Below the pieces are notes generated by a model. It was not told where the DNA came from, made no database searches, and saw only the letters and a program-made list of their open reading frames with translations. From contig NIVC01003424.1 in the NCBI GenBank assembly GCA_002269645.1, positions 34,271 through 98,270 of the forward strand: DNA of 64,000 bases. Reading direction: 5' to 3'. Below are positions 8,417 through 52,790 of this stretch, in pieces. Position 1 is the stretch's first letter, and each line of letters starts with the position of its first letter. A program made the position numbers and the translations under genes. This stretch comes from Macrostomum lignano (Eukaryota).

Positions 8417-9895
8417 GGTTTACCCCCGATTCGCCGATTCCTGGTTCGCCGAAATTCCCGAGTCGCCGATTCCCGATTTGCCAAAATTCCTGATTTGCTG
8501 AAATTCCTTATTTGCCGAAATTCCTCATTTGCCGAATCCCGACTTGCCGATTTCCTGATTCGCCGAATTTCCTCATTAGCCGAAATTCCTGATTCGCCGA
8601 AATTCTTATCCTGATTGGATGGAATTATAAAATGGAAATGGGTGGCGGGGATCGGGAGGGATACTGATAGGGTGGAGAGGAAGTCGGTCATCAGAGTATA
8701 TAAAGACCATCCTGTGGCGCATCAGAGACGTGCTATTTTTTATTTTTCATTGAGTACTGACTGTACCAAGAAACTCTACTAAAGCATTTCTTATATCCAA
8801 ACACAACAATATTTTCTATTTAAGAGTGAATTAATCGTTTCGCAATGGCTCAGGCAGGCCCACCCGAAAGGGCGGAGTTTATAAGGAGCGAAAGAGGAGG
8901 CCAGCTTCCTATCGTGAAGGTTTACCTTTTTCGCCTAGACAGAAGAACGGAAATCACTTCATACTTTAAGTGCCAACAGACTGGCTGCAATTTCCGGGCC
9001 AAAGTTGAAAATGGCCTGGTGACATCAACGACAAGCTTGCATGAGCATCCTCCGCCGTCGTCGGACGCTATTAAGCGCAAGAACTTCGCGGAAGAAATGA
9101 AGCAACAAGCCAGAGAATCCGCTCTTCCCATCAAGCGGCTCTATCGTGAAAAGATTACAGCAAGTGCTGCAGAGGGAGCCGAATTGGGCACCCTGCCAAC
9201 ATTCGCGAGCGTTAAGACAGCTGCTTACAACGCTCGACTCTCGGTGATCCCCTTTGCCTCCCACGGCTCAAGCCTACGAAGTTGAGGCAGAAGTTTTGAA
9301 CAACTTCACGGTAGGACTCCCGCGCAATGAATCCAGCAGGGAATCGAATTGTCGGCTTCTCAATGGACGCACTGATCGCTCGACTTGGCGAATGTGAACA
9401 AATTCAGATTGACGGTACCTTCAGTTGCTGCCTTCAAATTTTTTACCAGCTGTTTATCATTTATGGCAAAGTACTGAATGCATGGGAGCCACTTGTATTT
9501 TTCTTGCTCCCAGCAAAGGACCAGAAGACTTATGAGGCCTGCTGGGACCTAGTACAGGCAGACTCGAAGAGTCGTCGGTCAAGATTGCTAGGCAACTAAA
9601 ATTATCTCGAATTTTGAAGTTGGCAGCATGAACGCTGTGATCAGCAAATGGCCATGTTTCCCTGCTCCTACGCTGCGAGGTTGTTTTTTTCACTTTTTCC
9701 AGCAAATCAGAAATTTCGGCAAATCGGGAATTCTGGCGAACCAGGAATCGGCGAATCGGGATTCGGCAAATCAGGAAATTCGGCGAATCAGGAAATCGGC
9801 AAGTCGGGATTCGGCAAATGAGGAATTTCGGCAAATCGGGAATCGGCGATTCGGGAATTTCGGCGAACCAGGAATCGGCGAATCGGGGGTAAACC
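8417..9895. mobile_element. Mutator-like (MULE) element with long TIRs built of 11-12-bp subrepeats
   Basis: GGTTTACCCCCGATTCGCCGATTCCTGGTTCGCCGAAATTCCC at 8417 and its exact reverse complement ending at 9895. Each arm is ~190 bp of CCGAAATTCC(C/T)GATT(C/T)G-type units. Only a 2-bp flank match (GA/GA), no 9-bp TSD. Confidence 0.85.
8845..9705 (+). pseudogene. FLYWCH + MULE DDE transposase, frameshifted and 3'-truncated
   Basis: FIRSERGG...YFKCQQTGC..R....H.HPP (FLYWCH), then DGTFSCCLQIFYQLFII...PLVFFLLPAK and RGCFFHF in other frames. The sequence then runs directly into the right TIR. Confidence 0.88.
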
Positions 9896-11586
9896 GAGCA
9901 TAGTACCAGCTCACATCGGAATATGCCTTCAGCCAATAGGAAGGAACGGGGGAAAGGGATGCTATAAGTGAAGATCGAGCGAGACAAAAATAAGTGGTTC
10001 AGATTAGCACTCTATTCTATTCTTTCCTGTCCTGTCTAGGCATCTTGTCTAGCTCTAGTAATGCAAGTAACTAGCTGTTTAAAAAAGTACCACAGAGAAT
10101 TTTGGTCTAATTCAAGTGTATGGACTTGTCTATGGTCGAAAATTGGAGCTCGAGAATTTGGGATATTGGCAGGAAAATTTCAGGAAAACTGGGGTATGGA
10201 CGTAATTTTCTATTACTAATTTTCTATTAAAGTGTCTGAATTTAAGTTCTGCTTGTTTCTTTTAAACAAGACTTTGTTCAAAATAGGAGGTAAAATGGTG
10301 TGTTGGCTTTAGCTTTAATAGCTACATTGGCTCTCTATATTAGATCGGTACTCTTTGGGCTAGAGTGTAACGTAATTTCTTTGATGTATATTTTTTTATT
10401 TAACGTGAGCAATCTCCAAAAACAACGGAATTTGTCAGCAAACAGGTCAGTGCTCTAGTTGTAAAGCAGGCACCTTGAAAATAACCATTTCTTATTGATT
10501 TCGTACAAGTAAAATTAACAGCTACGATAATTTTAAAGCACAACTCGAACTACGTGTACGTATGATAAAGTCGAGGATATTAATTCAAAGACTACTAACG
10601 TAGAAGCATGCAACACTCAAAATCTATGGATCTTTGTGCTGAAAAATGAAAACTTCCTATCTCCGTAGTGTATTTTGAAAAAATGAAAACTTTTCCCATG
10701 AAACGTGAGTGTCGCGTCCTGTATATACGTTGCTGTAGTTGTCCTTGCATAAATTACATCTGGACTGTTTATTTAAATTCCCATTCTTGTGAAAAGGAGT
10801 ACTTAGAGAAGATATATACACATTCGGATATCTTTTTGCTAAGCATATTGAACTATCTTGTTGAAAAACAAAAGTATATGAAAAAGTGGTCGAGCCTTTA
10901 CGAATGAACTTATACCATTAGAAACAGACACAAATGAATAAACAAATACACTGTGGATTGGTTTGTATATATATTTTTTATAATTATCAAAAACCAAACA
11001 GCAAAGCATCAAAACATTTCTCACGCATGATGATGACGTCCGATCTCCGCCGCACAAAAGCAACACCAACTCTAGCTAAAGAGTAGTGAGATGGGAACCG
11101 TACGTTGCCAAAGCATATCGAGTATCATATATCATAGAGATGAATAGCATGCATGACATGTACCGGTCAGGGAACACTGAATATATCAAAGTGACACTCC
11201 CAAAAACTGTTAAGTACTAAGCTATATAGAAACGATTCGACCTGGCCCGCCTCGGCCCCACTATTTGGGGTGCACTTCGATAGCTATATCAAGTGCAGCG
11301 TTCTCTGCACCGGCGCACTAATCTGAACATGCACTAAAATACACTAGTTGTTGGATAGAAAGAGGCACTAGGGGTCGCAAATTCGGAAACACAAAGAACC
11401 TATTAATAAACACCGATACCCTCACTAGTTTCGCTGGTTATAATAAGCAAATTCACCAAATGGATCGCAAATAAAAAAATGAACTTTTGTTACAAACTTT
11501 TATAAATACCATACGATCTCTTTCAGGATTCGAAAATGTAGGCAAAAAGAAAGCGTAGGCAAAAAGAAAGCTTTGGCCAAATACAA

Positions 11587-12832
11587 TTAATCCAAATTGA
11601 ATGTTACGTGTCGCTCCATCGATTCCCGACGACTATTTAGACTGGAATCGACCTTGTCGGTTTCAGCTTTGGTTTCAGCGCTGCCGTCATTTCGTGAACC
11701 TCCTTCAACAGTGAAAGCTTCGCTTTCTGACGCCTGCACATCAGTATTATGTGGTAGCATTTCGTCCTCCGTCTGAGACGCCTCTAAACAGTCAACTTTT
11801 TCAGAATCGGTTGTCATTTTCGGCAAGCTGTCGTTTGGTGGAAGCTGTTTTATCGACTCCCCCGTGCTGCTTGCTTCATCAACGACCCCGGTGTCGACGC
11901 TCTGAGTAGGCTTACTTTCCTGTTCATTCTCTGGGCTCAGAAAGGGCTTTAGCGGTTCACAAAGCGTTTCAATGTCAAGGCAGCCAAACTCTCGCAAATC
12001 TGTAGCACGTTGCGTTGCCGTCAGACCTAGGTAGGCAGCCGCCATATCTTGATCGCACATTGAAACCAAGCAACGATTTGCGTGCGGAAGCAAGCACTTC
12101 TTAAATGCGGTACAACATAGCGCAAAGCCTTGCCGCTCAGCAGGCGTCAAGGCACCCGTTTCACTCGAGTACCAGCCAGCCAGTACGGCTACTGAGCGCT
12201 GCATTAAGTCTGACACCGCACTGCAGAGGGCAGGCACTAAACAGACGCTCATGCAAGGCCGCAGCTCGTTAAGGCCGGTGAGCATTCCGTTAAGCAACAC
12301 AGCCAGCGGAGGATAGTTAACAAGGTCATTTGGAGGCGGAATCTCATCAACATTAAAGCCCATTGATGCTTTTATTGACCCTCTGATATTGCTGCCATTG
12401 TCTTCATTGAACTCTTCTATGCCTGATCCGCTGTCCCAGTTTGCTGGTGCCACAGCAGTAGCTGGCAAGGCTAAGGCATACGAATACACGGCCGAGTGAA
12501 AATGCTTCAGTGCAATTTCAATAGAGACACGCAGCTGCGTCATGGCGGCCCGGCTAAATAAGTCCAGAAGATGGGGTCTAAAATCAGCTCCAATTTTAGC
12601 TAAACTAGCGCCGAAGTACATGCAGCAGGAGAGCAGCGACTCCAGGCGGCCGTTGGCTCCGGCCCCGCGGCCTAGGTCTCGCTCCAGGCACTCCAGGAAC
12701 AAGCACACACGATGCGTAAGCCAGCAATGAAGAAGCCCGGACTCGCTTGCTGGACCATCAGCAGAAGATAGCAATGGATCCTGATCGGCAAACGCTGCCC
12801 GATAATGGGTCACTGTATCGAATATCATGCTC
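11587..12832 (-). CDS. COG8: COG8 exon 3, with an acidic low-complexity tail
   Basis: Acceptor CTCACAG|G restores the frame (R-SMIFDTVTHYRAAF). Contains LLSCCMYFGASLAKIGADFR and PPNDLVNYPPLAVLLNGML. TAA at 11589-11587. Confidence 0.95.
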
Positions 12833-13036
12833 CTGTGAGTGGTGAGTGGGTAAATTGTGCATGGTTTGAGTCTCAAATCTAAGTACTTTTTTATTCATTA
12901 TTTATCAAATTCACAGTAATAACAGCAGAAATCAAGCTGGTTAATAGCAAATAACTTGAATTAGAACGCAGTGCCGTACTTAGCGCTATACCCTCATTGC
13001 CAAGACAAAACCTTTTTAGAGGCATTTTTAACTCAC

Positions 13037-13428
13037 CTGGTGTCCTCAGCAGTCTGTCTAGCGTGCTGATAGGGGTCATCCTCTTGAAGAGCCGCGAGTT
13101 GTCCGCTCAGGTAAGCGTCTCTGGCAGCCAAAAAATGAAGCCGTAACTGGGGTTCTGGGTAGGCAGCCAGCCGGCGCAGGTAGCCTAGAAGACGCAGACA
13201 GTCGGGCAGTTGAAGCCGTCCAGAACGCAGACGACCCGCCACTTGCGCGAGCATCTGCTCACTGACTCGCCGAACCTCGTCCAATACGCTAGTTACAACT
13301 TGTGCTTCAAGGAGACCGCGGCCACGCTCCAGTCGTTTTGCATAGCTGACCAGTTCGAGTGCCTCTTCCCAATAGTCGTTGCGCACACAAGTGTCCAAAA
13401 GTTGGGGAATTTCCAGCACTTCCAGTAC
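13037..13428 (-). CDS. COG8: COG8 exon 2
   Basis: Acceptor TGTGTAG|GTA. VLEVLEIPQLLDTCVRNDYWEEALEL...LQLPDCLRLLGYLRR is the Dor1 signature. Donor AG|GTGAGT, phase 2. Confidence 0.95.
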
Positions 13429-13626
13429 CTACACAGCGTGGTTTGAGTATTTTACTTTAGTATTGAATTATAAGATTGTTACAGCTCTATTATGATTTAA
13501 TGAGGATTAAATATGTTCGGTTCCAATTGCAATAACCATCAAAGGACGGTACTTTATACACACACGGCCTTTAAATTAAAAACGAATGACCTGAATTATC
13601 GACACTATAATTATATCCAGTCCCAC

Positions 13627-14052
13627 CTGGGCATGACGATGCAATCCCAGCTGCACGCGCCTGCGACGGCTTGCCAGCTGGCCCACAGACTCCGAGAAGG
13701 CAGCGCACCGGCCAGTCAGACGAGGTAGCCGGTCTGATAGCAGTGACTCGACGGTGAACTCGACACGGCTTAACTCGACCGACAACGCCCGTGTGGCCTC
13801 GGCCGATCGAATGAAGACTGCGTAGTTGCGGGCCGCCGTTTCTTGTGCCTCACGAGCCAGTTCAGTGTGCCGCTGAGCCAATCGGCGGGGCTCAGCACGC
13901 AGCTGGTTTGCGCCCAGGTCTGTCAGCTGGCCGAGGCACTCGCGCAGAACTGGCGAGTCAAGCCAGGTAGTCGGAAGTCGGCCATGTCGGATTACAAGTT
14001 CTGCTAGGCCCTCACTGTTACTGTTGCCGTCCCTATCGCCACTGGCAGACAT
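13627..14052 (-). CDS. COG8: Conserved oligomeric Golgi complex subunit 8, exon 1
   Basis: ATG at 14052, 142 codons, donor CAG|GTGGGA at 13627, phase 0. EPRRL...QETAARNYAVFIRSAE matches the Dor1/COG8 N-terminus. Confidence 0.9.
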
Positions 14053-15199
14053 TCTTAAATATAAAAGTTTTTCTGAAACATTGCATTTGAAAAATTTCAG
14101 ATTTGCCGCCCATTAAGACAAGTGGCCCTTGTACTGTACTGTACCCTTGTAAGTAAGATGGTTAGATGAGTGAATGGTAAAAAGGTAACAATACAACCAC
14201 ATTCCTAATCCTAAAAACAGGAGATGCAGACAGTTTGGGAATTGGTTTTAAAATTATTAGTACATGTCGTAAACACTGAACACAGGATGCAGCTATAAGC
14301 ATAATACTATATATAGCCAGATATGCTAATACTGCTCCTGTTGTACTTTTTTTCCAATTTACCACAATGTGGGAAAAGCTAAATTGGCCTCCCAACATAT
14401 AAGTGCATATTGTCATATAGTTTTAAATTGTTTTTACATTAGCTCAAGTGCAATGCCTTCAATCAAAGCTTTAAATAATTACTATAAGCATATCTATGCA
14501 CTTAGTTTCAGCCATTTTGTGATCGCGTTTTTATAGAAATGTCACTGATTTGTAGATCAAATTAAAAAATACAATAAGTGCCATATAACTAAGAGCCATA
14601 CATTCAAGGATTTTCCAAAAAGAGCTAGGTAACTTGTTTATAGTTGACATGTTTTGCTTCAAAACTGTAAAAATGTTGCTTTTGAATAATTTTAATAAAA
14701 AGTTTATGCTATAGTGATTTTCTTTTTCATTTTCTTACTTATAGCTATTTTACAATGTTTTATTTTCTTCCAAATTACAATTCTTCTGCTACCAATAAAA
14801 TATTTGTTGCTGTCTGGTTTTATTCAAGAGACCATGCACTGTAACAGTGGGAATACCAAGCAATTTTTCCACCTATCAAACTACCAAGGAGGGAGGGGTA
14901 AATTTTGACAATTTTTGCTTTGCTACAATGAAGCAATGTAGGCATACAAAATTCAAGAGCACAGGTAAACTTTCTGTTGCACATTTTAAACAAGAATACA
15001 ATAGTCACCCCTCCAAACTATTTAACAATTCAACAATTCTGCCAAGTTGGATTTTTTCCATAAAAGCTAACGTGTTGAATATAGCCATTGCACCAATTAG
15101 CATTACACCTCTATGCAGCCTTGCCAAGCCTACAAATTTCCTCAACACATTGACTATATATGCCTGAACCAGTTCTGACTTTGTTGGTCACTGGCTTTT

Positions 15200-15480
15200 A
15201 CCTAGGTAGAGCTTCTAGAACTTTAGCAGGTAATACTGGTTAACTATAGACACACTTTTGCAAATTTCTGAAAAAAGCTTAACTAATCTAAAGCTTTCAC
15301 AATTGGCAAGCTTCAACTGCTATACATCCTCAGCTAGTCTTTCAAGCATTTATTCATCACTTTAACACAATTGGCACCTTCAACAGATTACACTAGGCAA
15401 CTGTACTGTGCATTGTATTGTATATTTGTACAATCTGAATTAAGAAGAGTTCTTTGACAAATTCAAGCTAATTGTGTTGG
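15200..15480 (-). pseudogene. Possible heavily point-mutated PHD + coiled-coil ORF relic (LINE ORF1-like)
   Basis: One minus frame reads IQCTVQLPSVIC*RCQLC*SDE*MLERLAEDV*QLKLAN, with several stops and no frameshift. The resemblance is by motif spacing only. Confidence 0.3.
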
Positions 15481-18400
15481 GACTTTTCTCCTATAATGGC
15501 AACAACCTAATCTTAGTACTATACTTGGCAAATCAACTATATTTTCTAAGTCTCAAAAGCAAATTATAAGCAAATCATGTCTGTTAAGCATTCTAAAAGA
15601 CAACATTATAATTGACTACTTAGCCACCCACAACCATAGCTACCCTCCCTTAATCCTGAGGAACTTAGCCAGAGCTCTAATAGCATTTCTAGTTTGTTAA
15701 ATTGTTTTGGATTGCTAAAAATTTGGTATCAATTTAAAAGCAACTGGGTAAATGGGTAAACAGCTGGAATAACCATGAATGGATGGCCTTGTCAATGTCA
15801 ACTAATAAGTAGTTTAATCCTATATTGTTTATTTAGTTTTATTAAATAAATGATGGGACTAACTATGACTAACTTGCCTAAGCTGTCTATCTTATTGTCT
15901 AGTAAATTTAATTAATTAATAAGCAGTTTACTATTCTTTACTTAGTAAAAATTCACTTGAAATGCAGAACTTTGTATACTTCCTTATCTTGGCCTGCAGA
16001 CTAGCTGTTATTAAAATGTTTCTTGAACTAAAACTGCCATGACAAATTGGCAGCTTCTCAATGCTATGTAAGTAAGGAAAGCCTTTAGCAATTTGGCATA
16101 CCCAGAATGGCTAACTTATGTAAGTACTCTTGTAAAGGTTTTAGCTATCTTGGTTATATTCATCCTTTAAAATAGTCAAATATAAAAGGCAGACAAAAAA
16201 GCTTAATAAAAAAAGGATATATTAGGGCCAATTTAGACATAGAAATTGGTAAAAAGCAAAAGAATATAAGTAAAATAAAAATTATAAAAAATAGAAATAA
16301 AAAATAAAAAACTATACTTTATAGTGGAATTAAAAAGTTTTTTTGTCTTTTGCAGACCTGCTATATGACACATTTTATCAAGTTACTATCATAATTTCAC
16401 TTTGTACATTATCCCTTGTTTAATGTTAACTAACAATTAAATTTGAAAATTTAAAACATAATAGCAAAATGGTTATTCTTTATAGTCAAAGCATAAGATG
16501 CTATCTAGGCTAGGCCTAGGATTTTTATTTTTAATTTTATCTATAAAAATAGCAAAGCTATTATTTTTATGTTCCCTATACATGGAAAGCAAAATGGGTA
16601 TTTTTATGGTTATGCTCCATGGGGAAAAATCATTTAAATTAATAGTTAATAACTACCTAAAGCCAGCTAAGGTGGTGATAAGAATTACTAGAAGAACTTA
16701 CTATTATATCAATGTATTATAATATTAATAACAGAAGTATCATGTTCTTATTGCTAAAATAAGATCAATCTCTTGTTGAATATTTAATAAACTAGGGTCT
16801 ACCTCTCTCATATAAGTCTAGAATTTATCAACACTATCTTGAATAGGTCTCAGTGACTCTATTCAAATTATTCTCCATTCTCCACCCTTATTCTCCATGT
16901 CCTAGTGATTGGTTTTAATTTAAACTATATATTTAGGTTGAAGCTACCAAAAAATGAAGCTCAATTTTGAAATCATCACTATCAAAAACTACTATTGAGA
17001 GAAAACTATGACCTTATCAAAACTGCAACTAATTTATCAACATTAACTTGAAGAAGTCCCATTGGCCACATTTCTTTACTTTTTTTAAAATTTAACCACA
17101 TTAATTATTTACACTACAAGTTTGTTACTTCATTTAGATAGTATTTGTTTATTTTATTGTTTATTATTTGTCTATTTTATTATTAGGAAAGTAATATTTT
17201 ACACTAAGTTAAATTCTTATCAAAATAATATAAATGTTGCAGGGGTGTTTCTTCTTACTCTATAGATTTCAATCCTTACCATTAAGCCACCAAAGTTGTC
17301 GTAGGGCTTACTTCTGTCCTCCAACTATCCCACTAATTGCCACCAAGTTGTTACAGGTTTTTAATTTCCCTCTATTAAATTTCTATTGCTGACACTAAAT
17401 TTTGCCTTAATTTTTCCAACTGTTTCTTAGAATCTCATATATTTCTAGGTAGCATTCTTGTAGTGTTCTGGTAGCATTCCTAATATATGCTCTAGTAGCA
17501 TTCTTAGTATATGGCCTGAGTGGTCTTACTGGTATATGTACTTTCTCTCTCCATTCTGGGCATTACCAAGATTAGAGGGTCACAGCAATACTCTTAGTAC
17601 TCTCTTTGCATAAATTCCCAATTCTAACTTTCAATACTTTCAATAAAATAAGCAATGATCTGAGAATGGTTTATCTAACACATTTTGACATTATAGCCAG
17701 CAAACAAGTTTTTCTTCCATCTTTTCGGCTTTCTCCTATTTATAACTAGTCAATTGTGTATATTTAAAACAAATTCTTACAACTTAAGAATATTTCGCAT
17801 ATTATAACAAAAGAGTATTAATTTTTGCGCTAGTTTAAAAACCACAATTCCTAGAAATAAGATACCGCTACTACATAAATATGTATTTTTTGTCTTTATA
17901 AATTGAGGTACATAGTATGTTAATTTGTTTTAATAAAGTAACTTTAGTTTTACTGATCAAATTACTTTTGTTTTAATGGAATATTTCTTTACTTAGTTAT
18001 AGTGCTAGCCAATAGAGAGACATCTTAACACTATAAATCAAAGCAAAAAACAAAAAACTTTCTATAACTTTAGGTTAATCATTTTTGTAACCTTTTTGGT
18101 AACTTTGAAATTAAATTTTCTTTGGTCTTACTGTTTTAGTTATATGAAGCAAGATAGCAAAGAGGTCTAAAGTAGTGTTTGTAGAACAAGGCAGATTTGC
18201 ATAGCAAATCTGTTTAGATAGACCAAGGACATATTGCCAAATGAAATAGGTGTTATTGAATAAGCATTCTGCAAAGCAAAAAAGATGGATTGCCTAGTAA
18301 AAAGGGGGACTTCCTTAGAAGTAGACATTAAGTTATTGTATCCAAAATAGTGTGATAAAATATTAAATTAGGATAGACAATACTAAAAAGCCAGAAATAT

Positions 18401-18969
18401 CTTAGTTTTTGGTAATGCCATGTTGGACTATATAATTTAGGTGATTAATAGTCAGCAGTGTCTTGCTGCTTGGGTATTAAAGCTACTAGGATGGGTGCTG
18501 ACCAATTTAGCGACAAACAAATTTGGCAAAAGCAAATTCATTGACAATCTAGTCAAATTTGGCAACAATGAAGGAAGAACAATTGTGTATAGTTTTATTA
18601 ATTCTTATTGTTATATGTATTATATATATTAGCTTCCCTTTTTTAATAAGTTTGTATGATACATTATTTATCCTGTGCTTTTCGAATATTCAAATATCCA
18701 AATATGCTTTCCAAGAAAATTTGTTCATTCTCAATCTTGAAGATATGCAATGTCCAATTTATTTCAAAGGTCATATTGGCTTTGGTATAAAAATCACTAC
18801 AACTCCTTCGCAACAAGAAACAAATTCTAAAATGTGAAAAAGAGCACAAAGTGACCTTAATTTTGTTCAGCTTCACGAGGTTACAATAGAAGGTTCAGGA
18901 AAAGGTTGTGGTAAAATTGTAAACTTTAAAAGGTAAAATTGTGGCTGTCATTAAATCACATGGGGGCAT

Positions 18970-19990
18970 TTAGCTGACTACAGGCCTCAAGCAAAGCTTG
19001 GTCTGTTCTTGTGCCTGCCTTGTGTTTGTCCCAGATTTTGTTGTAAATGGACTGTCAACGGCGGATAGATATGCGCTACTTGCGCCAAAGGGCACCCTGT
19101 GATACAAGTTGCACATCAAGAGCTGCCAAGCTGGCTTCTTCGTGCAAGAGGCATATGAGCAAGTAAAACGAAATGTCATTTTGTTGGGCTTTGTGGTTCA
19201 GCCTTTGGTGCCAACCCTCCAAATCATTGTTTGTTTGTATAGAGTGGCGATAGGCTGAGAGGCAGTTGGAGGTACAGACAGAAGATGAAATCCATGTGGC
19301 CTATAGTATAAGGCATGAGAGAATATGAGAGATGACTCAGCTGATGAGCAGAAATCTGGTTCAGTGAGACTAGCTGAGTAAATTATAAAAGTACAATAGC
19401 TACATGTACCTGAACATACTCCACAAGTGCAGCTAACTGAGGCTCTTCATGCTGGCTGATTTGCGCTCAAAGCGTATAAAAGGTTCACTTGATGATTTCA
19501 GCTGGTAAAAGTGGCAAGGCCATAAGCTGGCGACAAACATCTTGCACCCTGTCATTATCAATGTAAGCTCGCTGGAGGCCAAGCTGCTGGACGTGTCGCC
19601 ACACAGCTTGTGTAAAATGAAAGAGGCAGCCACGCAGCTGGACACCAAGGAAGACGGAATGAATTGCACTCCATGCTGCCATTTCAAAGTCGAGAAGAAA
19701 TTCCCCAGGCCTGCAAAATTGGTTCATATGCAAGTGGCAAGATGTTATTTAATTATTTTAATTATTTAGTTATTTTACTTAATTATTCGAAAAACAAAGA
19801 CTTGCCTTGCATGTGGAATGATTGCACACTGCTTGAAATAGATCTATGTAGTCCCTATGGCTCTTTCCTTCCTGTCATCAGTGCAAATAGAAGTGGGACC
19901 TGCTTCATTGCTCCATTGTTACCAGAAATGAAAGCGTGAATGCTAAATAGTTGCATGAATGGTTGCAAAAAGTTGCAAACCACCTGGGAG
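18970..19990 (-). pseudogene. MULE transposase relic (catalytic region)
   Basis: PFMQLFSIHAFI...VPLLFALMTGRK, LLDFEMAAWSAIHSVF...RGCLFHFTQAVWRHVQQLGL and QTNNDLEGWHQRLN motifs, with frameshifts and stops. Confidence 0.88.
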
Positions 19991-20092
19991 ACTCTGCAAG
20001 CAGTGACAACTGTGCTTCTGTGGCATGACAGCTGCAGCACCCTGTAGCTTGATAGCAATATCTGGTGGCTCAACAGCTATAGCACCCTATAG

Positions 20093-20374
20093 CTATAGCT
20101 CAATAGTGATGTCTAGTGGCTGCTTGACGGCAGCTTGCAGGTTGACTGCATACTTAAACTGTGGGTCATAGACTTGACAGCGCCAGTTGAAAGATGTCTG
20201 CCCTTTTAGATACTGATAATTGCAAGCAGTTATATAATGTTCTTCTTTTAAACAGATGCGATGCACCCATAGGCAACATATGTCACATTGTAGGCCATGC
20301 TGCCTATTCCGAACTGCTTGTTTGCACAAGGGACATACATGTACATGTAGTGTGGCCATTTTTGCTTGATGCAT
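20093..20374 (-). pseudogene. PHD-finger ORF inside the MULE TIRs, upstream of the transposase core
   Basis: CPLCKQAV...GLQCDICCLWVHRICL...WRC shows C4HC3 spacing (the last Cys is not present). Confidence 0.75.
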
Positions 20375-20428
20375 CCACTGTATAGCTATTTATGGTCACT
20401 CTTTATAAGGCCAATTTAGTGGCTGGGG

Positions 20429-20694
20429 CATACATGTGCAACTGCTGGCCAACCTGGCCGATCTGGCCACCATAAATTGTGGTGGACCAGGGGTAAATTG
20501 CAAAAATGCCCAGCCTAAAGAATACAGACATAGGACTAATTAGATGACGAGGCATTTAGCCCTTATAAGACAATCATAGTTACTCCTGCCGTTTACCTAA
20601 AATTGCATTAGGGTTTCTTTCATAGGTAAGTCGCATTTTTGGTCAAAAAGTAAGTCGCATGGCCAGTATAAATCAGGGGGGTTGCACATGTATG
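20429..20694. mobile_element. hAT-type MITE, family A (copy 1)
   Basis: TIRs CATACATGTGCAAC / GTTGCACATGTATG and perfect 8-bp TSD GGCTGGGG (20421-20428, 20695-20702). Confidence 0.9.
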
Positions 20695-21360
20695 GGCTGG
20701 GGTATTAAGGAACCTCTGCCACAGAAATAGAAATAATGTACACACATAGCAGTAGTATCAATAAATCACTCAATCTAATCCACCACCAGAGGATTCTTGG
20801 CTGCGTCTTAGCATATAGCGCACCCAGCATTTCTGGCAATTATTTTACAGTATATACCAACTTCACTATACAAGTGCATTGTATAGAATTTTTGGGGTGG
20901 ATAAATTGATTGCTCATTAGGGCAGAGAGTGTACAATTGTACATTGAGGGACTATTGAATTGACAATCTGCATATAGCTACGTTTATACTTAAGATAATA
21001 AGAATTTCACTTCATTGTGTTAGGGTAAAACATTTAGTATATTTGGATATATAAGACTTGTTGCCAAATTTGCCTAGATTGTCGCCAAATTTGTTTGTTG
21101 CCAAATTGGTGTGCATCCATTAGGATAACTTATACTGAGGATAGGCCTAGCTTATACATATATAGTAAGAGATTATTAGTATATAGATAGAGCTATAAAT
21201 AATCAGATTTATTTAGATAGGAACTAGCAATCTTTGCCCCCCGTTGGGGTACATCTGTATAGAATCTTTGTTCTCTACAAGTAACAAAAAGATAGCCAAA
21301 TAAAGCCTTCACAAAGAAAACAGACAAAATATTCTAATGAAGTGCAATGCAAAAAGAAAT

Positions 21361-21585
21361 CATCCCAAGACAGCAAGCATACCCTAGATAGCAAGCATCC
21401 CCCAGATTGCAAGCATCCTCCCGATAGCAAGCAACCCCAGATAGCAAGCATCCCCCAGATAGCAAGCATCCCCAAAATAGCAAGCATCGCCCAGATAGCA
21501 AGCATCCCCCAGATAGCAAGCATCCTCCAGATAGCAAGCATCCTCCAGATAGATAGCATCCCCAAATAGCAAGCATCCACCAGAC
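21361..21585. repeat. 18-bp minisatellite (AGATAGCAAGCATCCCCC-type)
   Basis: About 12 imperfect copies visible. Confidence 0.9.
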
Positions 21586-21674
21586 AATAAGTAGCTAGTG
21601 CGACAATTGCCTTAGCATTATAGTGGCTCCTTAAAAATTTGCTTACTTTTACGTTTGAAACTGTGTATCTTTTA

Positions 21675-22355
21675 ACAATGTGGCTCTTTAAAATGTTTTA
21701 CATGGTGGCTCTTTTATGATTGACATGGTGGCTCTTTTATGTTGACATTGTGGCTCTTTTATGTTCTACATGGTAACTCTTTTATGTTTGATACGGTGGC
21801 TTTTCAATGTCTGACATGGTGGCTCCTAAATGTTTGACATGATGGCTCTTTTATGTTTGACATGGTGGCTCTTTAATATTCTACATGGTGGCTCTTTTAT
21901 GTTCAACATGGTGGCTCTTCTATGTTTGACATGGTGGCTCTTTATTGTTTGACATGGTGGCTCTTTAATATTCAAAATGGTGGCTCTTGAATGTTTAACT
22001 TAATGGCTTTTTAATGTTTTTCATGTTTGCTCTTTAATATTCTACATGGTGGCTCTTTTATGTTCGAAATGGTGGCTCTTTTTTGTTTTACATGGTAACT
22101 CTTTTATGTTTTATACAGTGGCTTTTTAATGTCTGACATGGAGGCTCTTTTATGTTTGACATGGTGGCTCTTTAATGTTTGACATGGTGGCTTTTTAATG
22201 TTCAAAATGGTGGCTCTTTTATGTTTGACGTGGTGGCTCTTCTATGTTTGACATAGTGGCTCTTTCATCATTGACATGGAATCACATATATGTTTGACAT
22301 GGTGGCTCTTTTATGTTTGACATGGTAACTCTTTAACATTCGACATGGTGGCTTT
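21675..22355. repeat. 22-23-bp minisatellite (CATGGTGGCTCTTTTATGTTTGA-type)
   Basis: About 30 copies. Variants TTCGA/TTTGA/TTCAA and GGTGGC/GGTAAC imply a CpG-containing ancestor. Confidence 0.9.
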
Positions 22356-22424
22356 TCTATGTTTGATATTGCGCTTCTTCATGTTTAGCATTTTGTGTTT
22401 TTAAGGTGTTTTAATAAAAAAATC

Positions 22425-22495
22425 TTTTTGCACTGCTAAGATTCGAACCCAGGTCGCTACATTAGCATTCTAGTTTATTCACATCTGGGCTATCT
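22425..22495 (-). mobile_element. tRNA-derived SINE head fragment
   Basis: Minus strand has GATAGCCCAGATG...CCTGGGTTCGAATCTT (B-box) but no complete cloverleaf. Confidence 0.45.
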
Positions 22496-24440
22496 CTTTT
22501 AAATTGGAGAACATGAACTGTGGCCCTTATAATTCAATTCTTATAGCAAGTCAATTGGAGTAAAAAGTTATGACATAATCAATTTCTCAATTAGCCAGTA
22601 TCAGTCTCAATTTAAGTTAGCAATATGGTTACGCAATTTTAATCAAGTCTTGTGTGCTTTTCTATGGCACTGTTTTCAACTTGTTGTGATGCAATCTTTA
22701 TCATAATTGAAATTCAGTCAGTCAGGTTTTTCTTTAGCATTCTTATAATGCATTTCAAGTTGAAAATTTTGCTTGACCTTAACAAAAAAGCACATTTTTT
22801 GAATATTTAATCCCTTTAAAATTGAGCAATTTCTTAGCCAAGATGCATGTACTGTCCCAGAAAAATTTCTGATCAAATGGTGCAAGTTTGAAGAAAATCA
22901 GTTAAGCCATTTTTCTGAAATCTATCTCACACATACATATACACATATAGACAACTATATGGGAAAAGCATAAAGCTAGGCCCCCGGCCCTAGTTATAAC
23001 TGGGTAATAAATTGGTAAGATTTTGATTAAGCAAAATTTCTCTAAAACAACCTATAGTTTAGATTCTCTAAATTTATTAGATTTATTTATTAATATTTAT
23101 TAATATATACTAGGTTTAATACTAGAAAAAATGATGACACATTGTTTGTAATATGTAATTTATATGCCAATATTTATAAAAAGTCATTGACACAATGCAA
23201 TGTTTCCACTATGTATGTTATATATGCCAGGATATAAGCTAGGCCTAATATATGCCAAAAATGACAAGTAGACCTACCTTGTTGTATGCCAGGAAATTCA
23301 GGTCTACATGTTGCCTTCCAAATTATAGAGAACAACTTGATAGCAATAGGATACAATAAAGTAACTAATAGCAAATAATACTAGGCAAAAGTTCTAAAAC
23401 AACTTACTTAGTGACAATTGTAAGAATTTATTAGGCCTAGGATAGAGCTAGAACCCTAGTTACAACTTAGTATTAAAAATAAGAGTAGGATCTTTTTTGT
23501 GTAGGACTATAGTAGGCCTATTATTACTTACAATAACTAGGTTTTATAATTGATAAATAGAATTTTTATTAGGTAGAAGTTATCCTCTAGCCTAGAACAA
23601 CTTGGTGGCATTAGTGGGATGGGATAGAGTAGCTAAAAACAGAGAACCCAACAATATGTTGACCATAAAAATAACTATCTAACTATTTATTCAGTCACTA
23701 GGGCCTAAGGCCTATATAGCATAACAATAAGAATAGCTAAGGCCTAACTAACAACTACCAAAAACCTAATATATAAAGTTTCATTGATATGGCGGCCGTG
23801 TCTCTAATAATGACTAGGTCCATACTTAGACATGGCTGCCGTATTTATAAGTATTTGCATTATAGACATGGCCGCCATGTCTATAAGTATGGACCTAGTC
23901 ACTATTAGAGACACGACTGCCATGTCTATAAGTTTCTGCATTATAGACACGGTTGCCATGTCTTTAAGTCTAAGTGTGGCATTTTCTGAAAAATGGGCTG
24001 ATAGTGATAGTGATAAGATAGGGCCTACCAACAAGTTAAAAGACAGGAAAATCTTTGATTAGGCCTATAGGCCTATATAATTAAATAACTAATAAGTATT
24101 TTACTTAAGTTATTAACTATCTGTAAAATAATGCGATATACATAAATGATTAAAAATCTATGAAACAGTCAATCCGGGTGCGACCACATGTACATCATGT
24201 ATTTGCAATTTATCTGGACTGCATTCATAATTCTAAATTCATAATTCAAAATAATTCTATTGCGTTCATGCAGTTAACGGCGCATACGATATAGGATATA
24301 GCAAAAACCTTATAGATAGAGTCGAACCTTACAACTAGTATTACATGTATCACTCAGATTATGGTCCGTTGAGGAGGTCTGTTGCGGTCCCGTTGCGGTC
24401 CCTTTGCGGTCCGTTGCGGTGTTTACACGGACACGTAATT

Positions 24441-24700
24441 GGGCCTTTTCATATTACCAATTCCAGAACCAGAATCGGTTTGGAATTCCAAGAAAAACAG
24501 CAGTATAACTATTAAACTCTGTTAATATTTGACTGCCTTAACAACCTCACTTAGCACAATTTTTAACATTCTTTTTGGCGATTGTCATTCAATAATAAAA
24601 ACTTTATAGCACGTATATCCCTCTAGTTATGGAGACTAAAAGTTATACTTCACAAATTGGTTCTGGTTCTGGAACCAGAACAAGCAATATGAAAAGGCCC
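24441..24700. mobile_element. 260-bp MITE, family B (copy 1)
   Basis: TIRs GGGCCTTTTCATATT / AATATGAAAAGGCCC. Near-identical copy at 53521-53779. Confidence 0.9.
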
Positions 24701-25036
24701 ATTGACACGTCAAAATTGTTTACGGAAAAAAATTACGAGTCAAATTAAGTCAAAAACTACAACAAATACCACAAACATTAGAAAATGTAATCGCTAAATT
24801 TAAGTAAAAATGTTTTGTTTTGGTTCATGAAACTAGCAAAATTAAAATAAATGGCTAGTCCAGATAAAAAACCTTCAAACTGTTTTAAAATAGCGCGTGA
24901 GTTCAGAAGTTTTCGTGTGTTCAAAATTCAATTATTGCTTAATTTATGAACATCATTCGGCCAGGCCCCTTAAACAACATTTTCAGCGTTTCCAATGCTA
25001 GGGTTTAGAGCGTACAAATCTTTAAAAAGTTCAAAG

Positions 25037-26409
25037 CATACATGCGCAACTGCTGGCCGACCTAGCCGTGGCCGATCCAGCCACTATAAATTGTGGTAGA
25101 CCAGGGGTAAGTCGCAAAAATGCCCACCGCCGTTTAAATCAAATTGCATTGATTTCGCTTTAGTGTTTCCCTTATAGGTAGGGTAAGTTGCATTTTTGTT
25201 CAAAAAATAAGTTGCATAGCCAATGTAAATCAATTGGCATTCCTTCGGTTTACGATCATTGAAATTAGTGACGATCCCCATTGGAGAGTCGGAGAGATAG
25301 GGAAGATACAAAAGTGTTGTTTATTTCTTCAACTTGCAAAACAGTTGACAAGCACTGCAATCCTTTTTATTTATACATCATAACACAAGTAGCACGCATG
25401 TTTGAATAAAAAAGAAGGTGGATTTTTAGTGATCCATTTCACCGCTCCAAGAATCCAAAGACGATCCTATATATCCACTTCGGTTTATGATCATTTAAAT
25501 GGGAGTAATACATGTAAATGATCGTGAACCAAAGCTAGCCATGTATTGAGATAGCTACAAGCTTTATCTGAAATCAAGCCCTATCTCGATACATGGCTAG
25601 CTTCGGTTCACAATCATTTACATGTATTACTCCCATTTAAATGATTGTAAACCGAAGCTGAGAGGGGGTGCCAGCGTGCAGAGAATAATAAAGTGTCAAG
25701 TTACTTAGCAGTGCACATTAACTCAAGACATTTTAATCGCCAACAAGTCCCACCAGTTGAACTAATAACTATGACTATACATGTCTTCAACACCCTCCCC
25801 TCAGCTTCGGTTCACAATCATTTACATGCATTGCTTCCATTTAAATGATCGTAAACCGAAGTGGATATATAGGATCCCGCGTCTTCTTAGATTCATTTTT
25901 TGGAAATTGAAATCATGCACTAACCCCCTTAACTGTCTCGATACATGGCTAGCTTCGGTTCACGATCATCTATATGTATTACTCCCATTTAAATGATTGT
26001 AAACCGAAGTGGATATATAGGATTGTCTTCTTGGATTCATTTTTGGAAATTGAATTCATGCACTAACCCTCTCAACTAGCTATCTCAATACATGGCTAGC
26101 TTTGGTTCACAATCATTTACATGTATTGTTTCCATTTAAATGATCGTAAACCAAAGTAGATATATAGGATCCTTGTCATTGCCATCGCAATGCCATGAAA
26201 GTAACCATTTGTTGGCTATTCTGTTCAGTTTTTCTAATAGGCCTATGTAACATATAAGCTTAGTTAGTTTAACAATTTTGTTTATTTCAAGTAAGCTACA
26301 ATCATTTATATGGAAAATTACATGGGGATGGGGATCGTGAACCGAAATGTACGTGGAAAAATGATCATAAACCAAAGGAATGCCAATCAATTAAGGGGTT
26401 GCCTGTATG
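25037..26409. mobile_element. hAT-type MITE family A (copy 2), split by a nested insertion
   Basis: Left TIR CATACATGCGCAAC at 25037, decayed right TIR GTTGCCTGTATG ending at 26409, TSD GTTCAAAG/GCTCAAAG (7/8). Confidence 0.8.
25236..26384. mobile_element. 1.15-kb non-autonomous TIR element with internal inverted subrepeats
   Basis: TIRs GGCATTCCTT(C/T)GGTTTA(C/T)GATCATT and its reverse complement, 8-bp direct repeat AATCAATT on both sides, and many internal TTCGGTTCACGATCATTTA / TAAATGATCGTAAACCGAA units. Confidence 0.85.
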
Positions 26410-26699
26410 GCTCAAAGCCAAAATATTTAAAAATTGGACCTGGGACAAGACATAGGCCTAACAAGCAAGGGGACTATTATGTATAGGCCTACTTAAGCTC
26501 ATAAGGTGGAGTCCCTATTGTCCCCTTGCTTCATTGCTTATTCTTTTCTATCAATCTAAAGTCTAATTTATGTAATCTTTTTTGCCAAATCTAGCTTCCT
26601 GGTGTCACTATGAACATAATGAATTATCATTTGACATTTGTATAATATAGGTTAATTCAGGCTCAACTTTTTAAAGCTTAAGTTGATACAATTGATAAG

Positions 26700-27342
26700 C
26701 CTAGGCCTTTTCTTATCTGTATCCTATGTAGGCAATGACAGTGCCTATTTGTCCGGTATTGCCATATCGGATGAATAAATTTAACTATTATTTGTCCAGT
26801 ACCAGATATAAAAGTAATCATAATTTTTTATGATTAGATGGTGCTGTTTCTCAGAAATTCTAGAACTTTAGGCAAAAAATACTTGGGCATAGTCTACACC
26901 TCATTGCCTGATCTAGCAGTTTTGTATAACTTTTACCTTTATTATATTTCATTCTATACATATCTGTATGTTTTGGTTTCACAGTAAACAGTAGTCATCG
27001 TACAATCAAAATTAATAATGACATTTGTTGCTTTATAACACAAATGTTAAAGTAAGGACTTTGAGTTATTACAATAACAATTGGAGTTCTTACAATAAAA
27101 AAGTGGAATCATCACTACAGATTTGAACTCAGTATTGACTGATCATCAAGAAGACACTCTAACATCACGCTAGTGTATTTTGCTAGAAAAGATGCGTAGA
27201 GTGGCATATAAATTCATGCAGCCCAGCTGGTATCAAACAAAAAACTTCACTATTATTTATCCGGTACCAGACAAATAATATTACTTTTATTTATCCAGTA
27301 CCAGACAAACAGTCATTGCCATATTGGCATATAAAAACCTAG
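26700..27342. mobile_element. Decayed MITE-like inverted repeat
   Basis: GGCAATGAC...ATTTGTCC(G/A)GTACCAGATA motifs at 26700-26815 are mirrored at 27248-27342. Confidence 0.5.
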
Positions 27343-29139
27343 AATAAAACAAAACATCATAAACAAAAACTGTTTGTTCAAACTGACATAATACAGCTAT
27401 GCTTAGGACCTATATTTTTTTGACTTTAATTCTTTGTTTTATTAAAACTAGTCTTTGAGCCCTTAAAAATGGCTATTTGGCCTCTGCTCTAAAATGCCAA
27501 TTATAGAATAATTAGAACAATTAGAATAACTATAGTCTATAACTTGCATAATTGAGTGACAAACAATAATAAATTTATATTATAACTTATATTTTTTATA
27601 TATATCAAAGACAATTTTGGTTATAGATAGTCAAGTTTAAATGTTTTTAACTATAAACACTATGATGTTTTAAATTGTTTTAATTGAAGTCCTATTATTT
27701 TCTTTTTAAAAATACCTCATAATATAAATTAAAAATGGTAAGCCTATAAAGTATAATAAAGACAATTAAAGTATTATATTGCAAAAGACGTATGATAACT
27801 GTTGGCCCAACAAGCAGTATAATGTCAATCAAATCAGAGATAAAAAGTATCTTTATTATTCTAGCAAAATTTTTGTTGCTTAACATAGACATAACATAGA
27901 CTTAACATAAATAGAAAACAAAGGAAAGCCCTAGGATTTTTTTTACTCTATTGGTCTTGGTCATTGGTGATAATAGTTAAGATCCTAGTCAAACTCAAAT
28001 TGTCAATTGGCATTTTGTCAATTAGGAAGCCATTGCCTCCTCAATATTGAGCCTAGGGAGAGATTTTAAATCAATATAGCCCTATTAGAATCATTATAGT
28101 CTATATATAATATAACTATATAATATCAATTTGAAAATATTTTATATTTTATTTAAAATTGATAGCATAGGCCTATTATTATGTTTATTGCCCTGCACCT
28201 AAGTCACAATCATATCAATTATTTATTATGAAATAAGAATATTATTTTATTATAATTTTATCAGCAGTTAATTACATGTATTCAACTGATCAATAATTAA
28301 AGTATAAGTTTTCATTCTTAATCATTAGAAAAGTAATGACACAATGGCACTAATTTTAAAATTCTTCTGTTTGAAAGGTGCAATCTGCCTTTTTGCATTA
28401 AAGTTCCATTGGTCAAGAAGGCTTTTTCTAATAAGTTTATCTGTTAAGTAATTTAAAAAACTAAAATGAAAATTCTTACAAGACTTTGTTTTCACTTGGG
28501 TTTAAAAAGATGCCATGCAATGCAAGGCAATAAACAAATTAATGAATTAATTTGGTGTTAGTCATTGCACTATTGTCGGTGGTTTCATTTACTCTTGCAT
28601 TTACCTTGGGTTATTGTCTGCCACTAAGCAGTCCCCTTCTCTTTGGTCAGCCTATTCTCCTGTCTTCTCCTTTTTCTCTGGGCTTTTGTTTATAGCCACA
28701 GGCATCTTTGTTATGGTATGCTTTTGGTTCATTCCATTTCTAAGGTCATGGCTAGTGGCCTATTTAGTAGTAGTAGTTCCTTTATTATGTGAGCTAATCA
28801 TATGGTAAGCCTTGTTTTCTTGGAGCCCAAAGTGCAGTAAACATGTTTACTGCATTTGTTGGCCTATGTTTATAGGGGAATCTTGTGTCCTAAGACCTTT
28901 GCCTTCTCTAAGTTTTTAAGGTGGGGGATGAAATCCATATACTAAAAATCTAGTATACTAAACATGAAAAATTTCTTAGTTGCTTGCTTGCTTGTATGTA
29001 GTCAATTATTTCCCAAATAGCTCAACCAATTTTTTGCAATTTCTTCACTATAAGATATCAAATATGCCTAAAACAATAATGTTATATCAAATAATACTTA
29101 AAATACCACTAATTGACAAAAATGTTGTCAACTATAGGG

Positions 29140-29840
29140 TAGAAAGGCTAGAGGCAAACTTAAGAGGGCAGAGAGGCAGACTCAAGGTGACAGAAAGGCA
29201 GACTCAAGAGGGCAGAGAGGTGAACTCAAGAGGGCAGAGACAGAGAGACAGACTCAAAGGAGCAAAGAGGTAGACAAGGAGGCAAAGAAGCAGACTCAAG
29301 GGGGCAGAGAGGGAGACTCAAGGGGATAAAGAGGCAGATTCAAGGGGGCAGAGAGGCAGACTCAAGGGGGCAGAAAGGCAGACTCAAGAGGGCAGAAAGG
29401 TGGACTCAAGAGGGCAGAGATAGAAAGACAGACTCAAGGGGGGCAGAGAGGTAGACAAGGGGCAAAGAGGTAGACAAGGGGGCAAAAAAGCAGACTCAAG
29501 GGGGCACAGAGGGAGACTCAAGGGGCAGAGGCAGACTTAAGGGGGCAGAAAGGCAGACTCAAGAGGGCAGAGAGGTAGATTCAAAGGGCAGAGACAAAGA
29601 GACAGACTCAAGGGGGCAGAGAGGTAGACAAGGGGGCAAAGAAGCAGGCTCAAGGGGGCAGAAAGGGAGACTCAAGGGGATAAAGAGGCAGATTCAAGGG
29701 GCAGAGAGGCAGACTTAAGGGGCAGAGAGGCAGACTCAAGGGGGCAGAGAGGCAGACTCAAGGGGGCAGAGAGGCAGACTCAAGGGGGCAGAGAGGCAGA
29801 CTCAAGGAGGCAGAGAGGCAGACTCAAGGGGGCAGAGAGA
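29140..29840. repeat. ~22-bp purine-rich minisatellite (GGCAGACTCAAGGGGGCAGAGA)
   Basis: About 30 copies, most regular at 29700-29840. Confidence 0.9.
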
Positions 29841-30513
29841 TGCAATGTAAATGATGGGTTTTCTATAAAAAAAACTTTCAATAAACTCAATCTAAGAGTT
29901 GCTAAGACTAAGACTTTGTCTATCTTATTCATGTTGTCAATTGTCATTAACTCTATCAAACTTAAAAAATTTAAGTGAATTGTTTGAAGCTGTAAAAGTT
30001 TGCATAATCAGGTTATTCACAAAACTGATAATATTATTATTTGTTAGTTAGACAGTCATGACATTAAGAAAAATAACATGCTTTAGCAACAGATCATCAT
30101 TAAAAGTAAGACAAATCTATGATAGTCATTTATATGCTTATTTAGTTCTTTTAAAAATTTGACACACAAACTAGTTTTTAGAAAAGAATGTTTTCAAACT
30201 AGTTAACTGGTTCTCAAAAAGGAATAATTTTTGCATCTTTACCCTTTACCATTGTTTCTATCAAGGGTTTCTCCAATTTCCAAACTTGTCATTATTGTTC
30301 TCTAAGCCTCTAAGTCTTCCATGTTAGTTCCAGTTGCCTTTTTAAGCTATTTATAATTTGCCTGACTAAACTCAGATGCCTAAGCCTAAATGAGGCTAAC
30401 ACAACCATCCATTGCGCCTGGTAAGATCTGTTGACTATGTAGAATGCCTTGCTTATTAATCTGCAAATCTGCAGAGTGCTGAGTTTGTTGACTTGTTTAT
30501 TTCATTCCTATAG

Positions 30514-51269: not shown

Positions 51270-52790
<1,521 letters not shown>

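Follow-up and report, generated by a model that had tools for sequence, protein, structure and literature searches.

Three sharply bounded CpG-depleted blocks beside gene 5' ends in Macrostomum lignano, probably a footprint of regional germline cytosine methylation

Genes and CpG-depleted blocks in the window

Three blocks of DNA in a 64,000-nucleotide stretch of the genome of the free-living flatworm Macrostomum lignano have lost most of their CpG dinucleotides, and each of them adjoins the 5' end of a gene or putative gene. The stretch, which is called the window in what follows, is the final 64 kb of the 98-kb contig NIVC01003424.1 of assembly GCA_002269645.1 (Mlig_3_7). Block borders were drawn by a two-state hidden Markov model (HMM) run on CpG, and the significance of depletion is given as the Poisson probability (P) of the observed against the expected number of CpGs; o/e stands for the ratio of the two. 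From left to right, the genes and the blocks are:

2291-3568, plus strand: last exon of a KLHL2/3-like gene, at the left end of the window
11587-14052, minus strand: COG8 (Dor1) coding sequence in three exons, with its ATG at 14052 (Pfam Dor1; protein P0121, which is BOX15_Mlig000149g2)
14073-23766: block 1, upstream of COG8 (HMM; 59 CpGs against 282 expected, o/e 0.21)
26366-32084: block 2, upstream of zinc-finger-like open reading frames (ORFs) (HMM; 13 CpGs against 173 expected, o/e 0.08)
33664-34355 (33.6-34.4 kb), plus strand: putative zinc-finger gene, a weak assignment (three C2H2-like motifs only)
53888-60231: block 3, in two HMM segments, 53888-54892 (3a) and 55375-60231 (3b), o/e 0.14 in each
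59824-62678, plus strand: COQ8 (ABC1 atypical kinase) coding sequence in five exons (splice model; Pfam ABC1, 1e-73; PDB COQ8B, 1.8e-166)

The five-exon splice model of COQ8 is identical to the annotated protein PAA47339.1. No annotated gene lies inside block 1 or block 3, nor does the annotation place one in the 10 kb upstream of either COG8 or COQ8.

CpG o/e in 1-kb sliding windows stands at ~0.8-1.1 to the left of 14.0 kb, COG8 included, and falls in three troughs: 0.00-0.38 (14.0-23.8 kb), 0.00-0.32 (26.4-31.9 kb) and 0.05-0.6 (54.0-60.2 kb). A preliminary description of this DNA had reported sharp CpG-poor domains at these three sites, and the HMM recovers them, with an o/e of 0.08-0.21 against a background of ~0.8-1.0 and Poisson P values of 1e-31 to 1e-49 for the depleted segments. 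The depleted state covers about one third of the window; the blocks hold 96 of the window's 1972 CpGs. The same description had counted a single CpG between ~14540 and ~17290, and the count is exact: the sole CpG between 14526 and 17300 is at 15071, leaving 2229 CpG-free nucleotides (15071-17300) where 48 CpGs are expected (P ~1e-19). Block 2 contains two such CpG-free runs, at 28577-30415 and 30415-31754, the 1.8-kb run having a P of 1e-29.

Transitions between the two CpG states span ~20-300 bp. A gradient, or plain AT-richness, can be rejected as the origin of the pattern because o/e corrects for base composition and switches within tens to a few hundred bases. Only CpG is lost: the other symmetrised dinucleotides in the blocks range over 0.57-1.74 (GpC, 1.3-1.7), and TpA, at 0.87-1.0, is not in excess. 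TpG/CpA, the product of CpG deamination, is raised: its o/e reaches 1.40 in a decayed transposon within block 1 (described below), is 1.11-1.22 in blocks 1, 2 and 3b and 0.94 in the 1-kb segment 3a, and is 1.09-1.14 outside. The blocks also differ somewhat from their surroundings in CC/GG (1.16-1.47, versus 0.9 outside) and GA/TC (0.75, versus 0.97).

The placement of the blocks 5' of COG8, of the zinc-finger-like gene and of COQ8, also part of the preliminary description, is borne out: blocks abut all three 5' ends. At COG8, whose exons have a CpG o/e of 0.86-1.0 and whose introns have 0.74-0.92, block 1 reaches to within 20 nt of the ATG on its left side. At COQ8, the right border of block 3 falls inside intron 1, so that the block extends from upstream of the gene through coding exon 1 and 200 nt into intron 1 (with one interruption, a transposon at 54840-55355). 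Coding exon 1 (59824-60030), with an o/e of 0.23, is embedded in depleted DNA; exons 2-5 are at 0.79-1.0. The proposal that borders ignore exon limits accordingly holds at COQ8, where the gene model is that of the annotated protein. Coding exons farther downstream, which the same description had as CpG-rich, are so in COG8 and in COQ8 exons 2-5.

CpG mutability between sister copies of the loci

Macrostomum lignano is a recent polyploid, and the assembly contains sister copies of both housekeeping loci, those compared here being 97.6-98% identical to the window. The COG8 locus is represented by copies L003 (NIVC01003754.1) and L005, the latter collinear with window positions 10630-23910 at ~98% identity, and the COQ8 locus by copies L006, L007 and L009. 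A further COG8 contig, L004 (NIVC01004959.1), differs from L003 over 7.5 kb by single-base and short indels only, with zero substitutions; they appear to be two assemblies of a single haplotype, set apart by indel errors of long reads, rather than independent copies, and L004 is treated as redundant. The junction between COG8 and block 1 recurs, at the same place, in both of the further independent copies, L003 and L005. Contamination or misassembly was considered as a source of the pattern and rejected on the strength of these identical junctions in independent contigs.

Are the CpGs that remain in the blocks unusually mutable? Comparison of the window with L005 (the block 1 count leaving out tandem arrays, the gene count comprising COG8 and its 3' flank) finds exchange between CpG and TpG/CpA at 18 of 53 sites in block 1 and at 3 of 188 in the gene (Fisher p=8.6e-11). 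Against L009 the corresponding numbers are 6/29 in block 3 and 3/168 in the COQ8 body (p=3.8e-4). Pooled, 24 of 82 CpG sites have changed in the blocks, versus 6 of 356 in the genes (p=4e-14). The L003/L004 comparison, in which 2 of 11 CpG sites have changed, offers too few sites. Counted per base, CpG transitions outnumber other C/G transitions by 5.0-5.5 to 1 in the blocks; for the genes the ratio is 0.6-1.3. Even a young transposon embedded in block 3, a miniature inverted-repeat transposable element (MITE) at 54840-55355, has changed at 3 of its 17 CpG sites relative to L009, with one other substitution (p=0.011 versus the gene). The preliminary description had postulated a heritable, cytosine-directed process, and the hypermutability of CpG in the blocks upholds that much of it.

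Overall divergence of the blocks is 1.0% (L003), 1.6% (L005) and 1.25% (L009), and that of the adjacent genes is 1.1%, 1.1% and 0.8%, respectively; in these three comparisons no large, general hypermutation of cytosine is seen in the blocks. The ratio of transitions to transversions at non-CpG sites relative to L005 is 5.4 in block 1 and 2.6 in the gene. Since an excess of CpG transitions is found in the blocks of copies that are only 1-2% diverged, the responsible process has acted after these copies split. To judge from these sequence comparisons, the loss of CpG is recent or ongoing, specific to CpG and confined to the blocks.

The copies also differ in other respects. L009 carries extra stretches of ~0.9 kb in block 3 (its positions 8373-9297, at window ~59042-59096) and ~0.7 kb in COQ8 intron 3 (11841-12547, at ~61592-61667). 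Between KLHL and COG8, an intergenic region with normal CpG content, sister copies have diverged by ~3%, three times as much as in the genes or block 1 (~1%); this region also contains inverted repeats at 8417-8584/9726-9895 and at 4238-4658, whose arms, 82-138 nt long, are 93-95% complementary.

Repeats in, between and outside the blocks

What are the blocks made of? Repeat-derived features that could be recognised in and around them are as follows (TIR, terminal inverted repeat; MULE, Mutator-like element; LINE, long interspersed nuclear element; RT, reverse transcriptase):

18490-21135, minus strand, block 1: decayed MULE DNA transposon with TIR-like ends; transposase pseudogene at ~19080-20390
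17234-17587, plus strand, block 1: copy of an ancient dispersed repeat (nhmmer E=1e-11 to the block 3 copy)
56860-57300, plus strand, block 3: copy of the same ancient repeat (nhmmer match to 17234-17587)
20428-20700, plus strand, block 1: member of a short dispersed repeat family with further copies at 25036-25232, at 32162-32403 and at 2252-2415 of L003
21347-22480, block 1: tandem arrays with 18-nt and 23-nt periods (families D5 and D11)
29101-29886, block 2: tandem array with a 22-nt period, GC 0.47, no CpG (families D7 and D8)
23782-26352: island of 2.6 kb that separates block 1 from block 2, made up of clustered younger repeats
24441-24700, in the island: 260-bp MITE, 96% identical to 53521-53779, just to the left of block 3
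25451-26172, in the island: foldback/direct repeat units of ~100-220 nt
54840-55355, in block 3: young MITE with 20-nt perfect-looking TIRs (CCATAGCTGGGAAGGTGGCA / TGCCACCTTCCCGACTATGG), CpG o/e 0.84
L003 6518-8797, minus strand of the locus, inserted at window ~15290: 5'-truncated LINE with an intact 759-amino-acid RT/RNase H ORF

The blocks are repeat-derived at least in part. The MULE was recognised in a Pfam search of the blocks made on concatenated stop-free segments, which gave this match in block 1 and none in blocks 2 and 3. A peptide stitched from three minus-strand frames (~19.08-20.39 kb) matches annelid and cnidarian MULE transposases at E=8e-38 and the Pfam MULE family at E=6e-5; inverted, TIR-like repeats with subterminal motifs flank the element at 18514-18568 and 21058-21113. 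Neither for this element nor for the MITE at 54840-55355 were convincing target-site duplications found, and a search of M. lignano for intact MULE relatives gave none. The element has a CpG o/e of 0.33, and its TpG/CpA excess is the highest of all. Among the conserved arginine codons of the transposase pseudogene three are still CGN and three are now CAA or CAC, which reads as change of CpG to CpA in place. Tandem arrays are present in each block, and the ancient repeat is common to blocks 1 and 3. The preliminary description had seen in the blocks a misfit to transposon-targeted methylation, and the decayed MULE, shared old repeat and tandem arrays in parts of the blocks speak against that objection.

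The short dispersed repeat family allows decay to be followed from copy to copy. At CpG-type sites, the copy at 20428, in block 1, reads CG at 5 and TG/CA at 12; for the copy at 32162 the tally is 14 CG and 3 decayed sites. CpGs still present in the copy outside block 2 are gone from the copies in the island and in block 1. At one site TG is found in one copy, CA in another and CG in a third, a pattern that in an alignment of this kind is the classic sign of independent decay.

The CpG-rich islands in or beside the blocks are, by all indications of their sequence, young transposable element (TE) insertions. In the preliminary description these CpG-retaining islands served as the anchor at transcription start sites (TSSs); they turn out to consist of MITEs with TIRs and of foldback repeats, with a LINE in a sister copy, and the island at 23782-26352 is not a demonstrated promoter. 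Blocks 1 and 2 are probably one intergenic region of ~18 kb, lying between the divergent COG8 and zinc-finger-like genes and split by recent insertions. Insertion into block 1 can also be seen in L003, which holds two extra CpG-rich insertions there; one is the LINE at ~15290, present in L003 only and missing from the window and from L005, to all appearances a very recent insertion polymorphism between copies. In the foldback units of the island (25451-26172) 6 of 10 CpG columns are variable, as against 21 of 82 others (p=0.059); restricting the count, post hoc, to the core makes this 6 of 10 against 10 of 67 (p=0.004). Nearly all differences among the foldback copies are transitions: one pair shows 23 against a single transversion, and a second pair 9 against none. 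CpG sites account for many of these changes, but many fall elsewhere. The left border of block 3 coincides exactly with a short (CG)n-type microsatellite at 53838-53860 (ten CpGs within 23 nt), ~60 nt beyond the copy of the 260-bp MITE.

Two repeats outside the blocks look different. A block at 45.5-48 kb (45500-48000; GC 0.59-0.63, CpG o/e 1.08) contains overlapping long ORFs, one of which (46504-47313) has an RVT_1 domain (E=7e-13); it is probably a fragment of a young retrotransposon of the kind that lacks long terminal repeats. A 61-nt tandem satellite at 42475-44177 (42.6-44.1 kb) comprises ~28 copies that are 95-98% identical, with a GpC o/e of ~2.1; variability is no higher at the CpG sites of the satellite than at its other sites, and not every repeat is affected, therefore. 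To put it together, young TEs in or between the blocks vary with a CpG bias, and the RT block and the satellite outside do not show depletion or bias.

The remainder of the window yielded little else. Ten ORFs at 32-48 kb had no match in Pfam, and scans of the window with Rfam and for tRNAs had no matches. Just downstream of the C2H2-like ORFs (34788-35345) lie ~7-9 tandem copies of a 62-nt unit, which are up to 99% identical and have a CpG-free consensus. About 1.5 kb of GA-rich low-complexity DNA occupies 51200-52800, where a (GA)n tract (52020-52250) yields long, spurious minus-strand ORFs.

Regional methylation, its rivals and its relatives

What has to be explained is the depletion, its specificity for CpG, the TE content of the blocks, the young age of the islands and a hypermutability of CpG that is recent and specific to the blocks. 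Probably, the blocks are old, repeat-derived intergenic DNA subject to regional germline CpG methylation and to the canonical decay of 5-methylcytosine (5mC), with edges that arise at its contacts with unmethylated gene bodies or with recent insertions. On this account the blocks, largely derived from transposons and repeats, would be CpG-methylated now, or would have been until very recently, in the germline or the stem-cell lineage, the methyl groups being laid down by the canonical DNMT1/DNMT3 machinery. Deamination of 5mC would then convert CpG to TpG or CpA ~10 times faster than other sites mutate, and the blocks would drift to a CpG o/e of ~0.1-0.2 and turn AT-rich. Methylation would be regional, covering all the DNA of a block, new transposon insertions included, and insertions that are still CpG-rich would be so only through youth; methylation does appear to follow regions rather than particular elements. 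The transcription units of COG8, of COQ8 (exons 2-5) and of KLHL would be unmethylated and their CpG o/e would stay near 1. Two types of edge would result: one where methylated intergenic chromatin meets an unmethylated gene body, the other where old, decayed DNA meets a recent insertion.

The magnitude of the effect is that of a familiar process. A per-site excess of CpG mutation of about ten-fold is the size of 5mC deamination in mammals, and an excess of that size leads to an equilibrium o/e near 0.1-0.2, as observed. M. lignano, unlike planarians and parasitic flatworms, has retained DNMT1 and DNMT3, and its 5mC is low (PMC11292947, PMC9246332). Since a ~10-fold, CpG-specific rate fits 5mC deamination in an animal that keeps both enzymes, no new mutation system is needed, and the hypermutation system of the preliminary description would reduce to ordinary decay of 5mC. 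A low global 5mC is to be expected where methylation resides in DNA from which ~85-90% of the CpGs have gone, and the small share of the window's CpGs found in the blocks (96 of 1972) fits such a figure. The bisulfite sequencing study of Wasik et al. (2015) aside, no published description of the methylation landscape of M. lignano was found.

Several observations sit uneasily with regional methylation of old repeats. No TE family could be recognised (Pfam, stop-free segments) in the greater part of block 2 or in large portions of blocks 1 and 3, among them their most AT-rich parts. Over kilobases CpG o/e is 0.00-0.05, which is below that of vertebrate bulk DNA. Non-CpG transitions are ~2-3 times commoner in the blocks than in the genes, a difference that may reflect only the missing coding constraint. 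Why should all three blocks adjoin gene 5' ends? Plain methylation of TEs does not predict that. Block 3 takes in the presumed COQ8 promoter together with coding exon 1, and two housekeeping genes would be expressed from DNA that is, by its sequence, apparently methylated. A preference of transposons for insertion near 5' ends might account for the contact, but this is speculation, and from five gene starts it cannot be said whether the contact exceeds chance. Finally, 5mC as the cause is something that we infer, as is the chromatin feature that sets the border next to a gene.

The contact with 5' ends bears on two further explanations. The one put forward in the preliminary description is that cytosine modification or hypermutation is anchored at TSSs lying in the CpG islands, extends for 6-10 kb over 5' introns or trans-spliced leader regions (outrons) and stops at coding exons. 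Three blocks do end at or just inside gene 5' ends (the COG8 ATG at 14052, COQ8 intron 1 and a position upstream of the zinc-finger-like ORFs), blocks 1 and 3 contain no annotated gene, plausible AG acceptor sites lie just upstream of the COG8 and COQ8 ATGs, and many M. lignano genes are trans-spliced (PMC5730564). Yet the islands in which the starts would lie are TE insertions, and the testable one, the MITE in block 3, is itself CpG-hypermutable; the blocks, for their part, hold a transposon pseudogene and dispersed repeats. The supposed limit on distance from the TSS is contradicted by the sister copies: depleted DNA extends 9.7 kb upstream of COG8 in the window and in L005, versus ~4.2 kb in L003. 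Promoter anchoring is no better served by the 5' regions of the KLHL gene and of a GPN-like gene on the same contig, neither of which has a block, so that 3 of the 5 gene starts examined have one. Divergent transcription through blocks 1 and 2 should leave mirror-image TG/CA skews; these are not seen, the values of (TG-CA)/(TG+CA) for blocks 1, 2 and 3b being 0.006, -0.105 and 0.000, respectively. With a mutation rate, in addition, that matches ordinary 5mC decay, anchoring at TSSs is an explanation to which we attach quite a low probability. The other is an "inverted" mosaic methylome, in which germline CpG methylation would spare gene bodies and blanket the DNA just upstream of start codons, with promoters, outrons and even a first coding exon, its borders near genes being set by a chromatin feature linked to transcription or trans-splicing and with housekeeping genes expressed from CpG-erased 5' flanks. 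The canonical gene-body pattern is not what is found here (the COG8 and COQ8 bodies keep their CpGs and their intergenic 5' flanks are depleted); we rate the inverted methylome as unlikely.

The remaining explanations concern when and how the CpGs were lost. The blocks might be relics, methylated in an ancestor whose methylation has since been lost or reduced, with the CpG deficit persisting and CpG-rich DNA being either under selection or of more recent date than that loss. The low global 5mC reported for M. lignano would suit relics, as would the fact that all classifiable CpG-rich non-genic DNA is young TE; the 10- to 20-fold excess of CpG transitions in blocks of copies that are 1-2% diverged, found in the young MITE as well, would not, and we consider relics rather improbable. 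Alternatively, no local process need be invoked if foreign or TE DNA was already CpG-poor on arrival. The distinct dinucleotide signature of the blocks (in CC/GG and GA/TC) and the failure to find intact MULE relatives in M. lignano would be in keeping with such an origin, but it is opposed by the in-situ decay of the MULE's arginine codons, by the loss from the block 1 copy of the short repeat family of CpGs that other copies have kept, and by the mutability of CpG between sister copies; inherited composition is very improbable. Equally remote, in our estimate, is enzymatic deamination aimed at repeats, of the kind exemplified by repeat-induced point mutation (RIP) or by AID/APOBEC enzymes, in place of passive 5mC decay. 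The nearly pure transitions between foldback repeats at 25.45-26.2 kb and the elevated non-CpG transition:transversion ratio of block 1 would speak for it. Neurospora-type RIP, however, yields an excess of TpA, and in the blocks only CpG is lost, overall divergence is modestly above that of genes, and the 61-nt satellite lacks CpG bias; RID-type enzymes, to our knowledge, are known only from fungi.

If regional methylation of old repeats is the right explanation, the methylome of M. lignano is predicted to be concentrated in sharply bounded, repeat-derived intergenic blocks, with housekeeping gene bodies free of methylation: the reverse of the canonical invertebrate pattern. The low reported global 5mC would then be explained, the methylated compartment having already lost most of its CpGs. 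There are also practical corollaries: CpG-rich "islands" encountered in scanning such a genome can be mere young transposon insertions, and comparison of sister copies in a neopolyploid assembly can take the place of a methylome for testing the germline hypermutability of CpG.

How do the blocks compare with what is known elsewhere? Fungal RIP, too, turns repeats into AT-rich tracts with sharp limits by C-to-T transitions, but its bias is for dinucleotide changes such as CpA to TpA, with an excess of TpA, and it employs RID-type enzymes; here CpG alone is lost. The vertebrate genome offers the same ~10-fold hypermutability of CpG and the same equilibrium o/e of ~0.1-0.2 outside protected regions; it differs in that the CpG-rich parts of the window are gene bodies and young TEs, not promoter islands, and in that the COG8 and COQ8 promoters appear to lie within depleted DNA. 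Repeat-directed CpG methylation is known from DNMT-retaining nematodes, from fungi and from plant heterochromatin. The window resembles these in that the decayed DNA is in part repeat-derived, genes are spared and new insertions share the fate of their surroundings. Transposons as such may not be the target: a young LINE-like RT block (45.5-48 kb) and a satellite, both in CpG-normal DNA, lack depletion or CpG bias, and the blocks include the COQ8 promoter region and a coding exon.

The closest relatives may be the mosaic methylomes of invertebrates (Ciona, oyster, annelids). Ciona has mosaic methylation with footprints of CpG depletion, and the group as a whole shares with the window the sharp alternation of CpG-depleted domains, methylated in those animals, with unmethylated domains at an o/e near 1, the possession of DNMT1 and DNMT3 and, as suggested here, depletion by 5mC deamination. 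In the canonical invertebrate pattern it is the bodies of constitutively expressed genes that are methylated, along with TEs in some species (PMC11292947). In the window, by contrast, it is intergenic 5' flanks that are depleted, and COG8, COQ8 and KLHL have an o/e of 0.86-1.0, with CpGs that are not hypermutable. The blocks thus belong to a known kind of feature, the unusual element being that the bodies of housekeeping genes look, from their sequence, unmethylated right beside heavily decayed 5' flanks.

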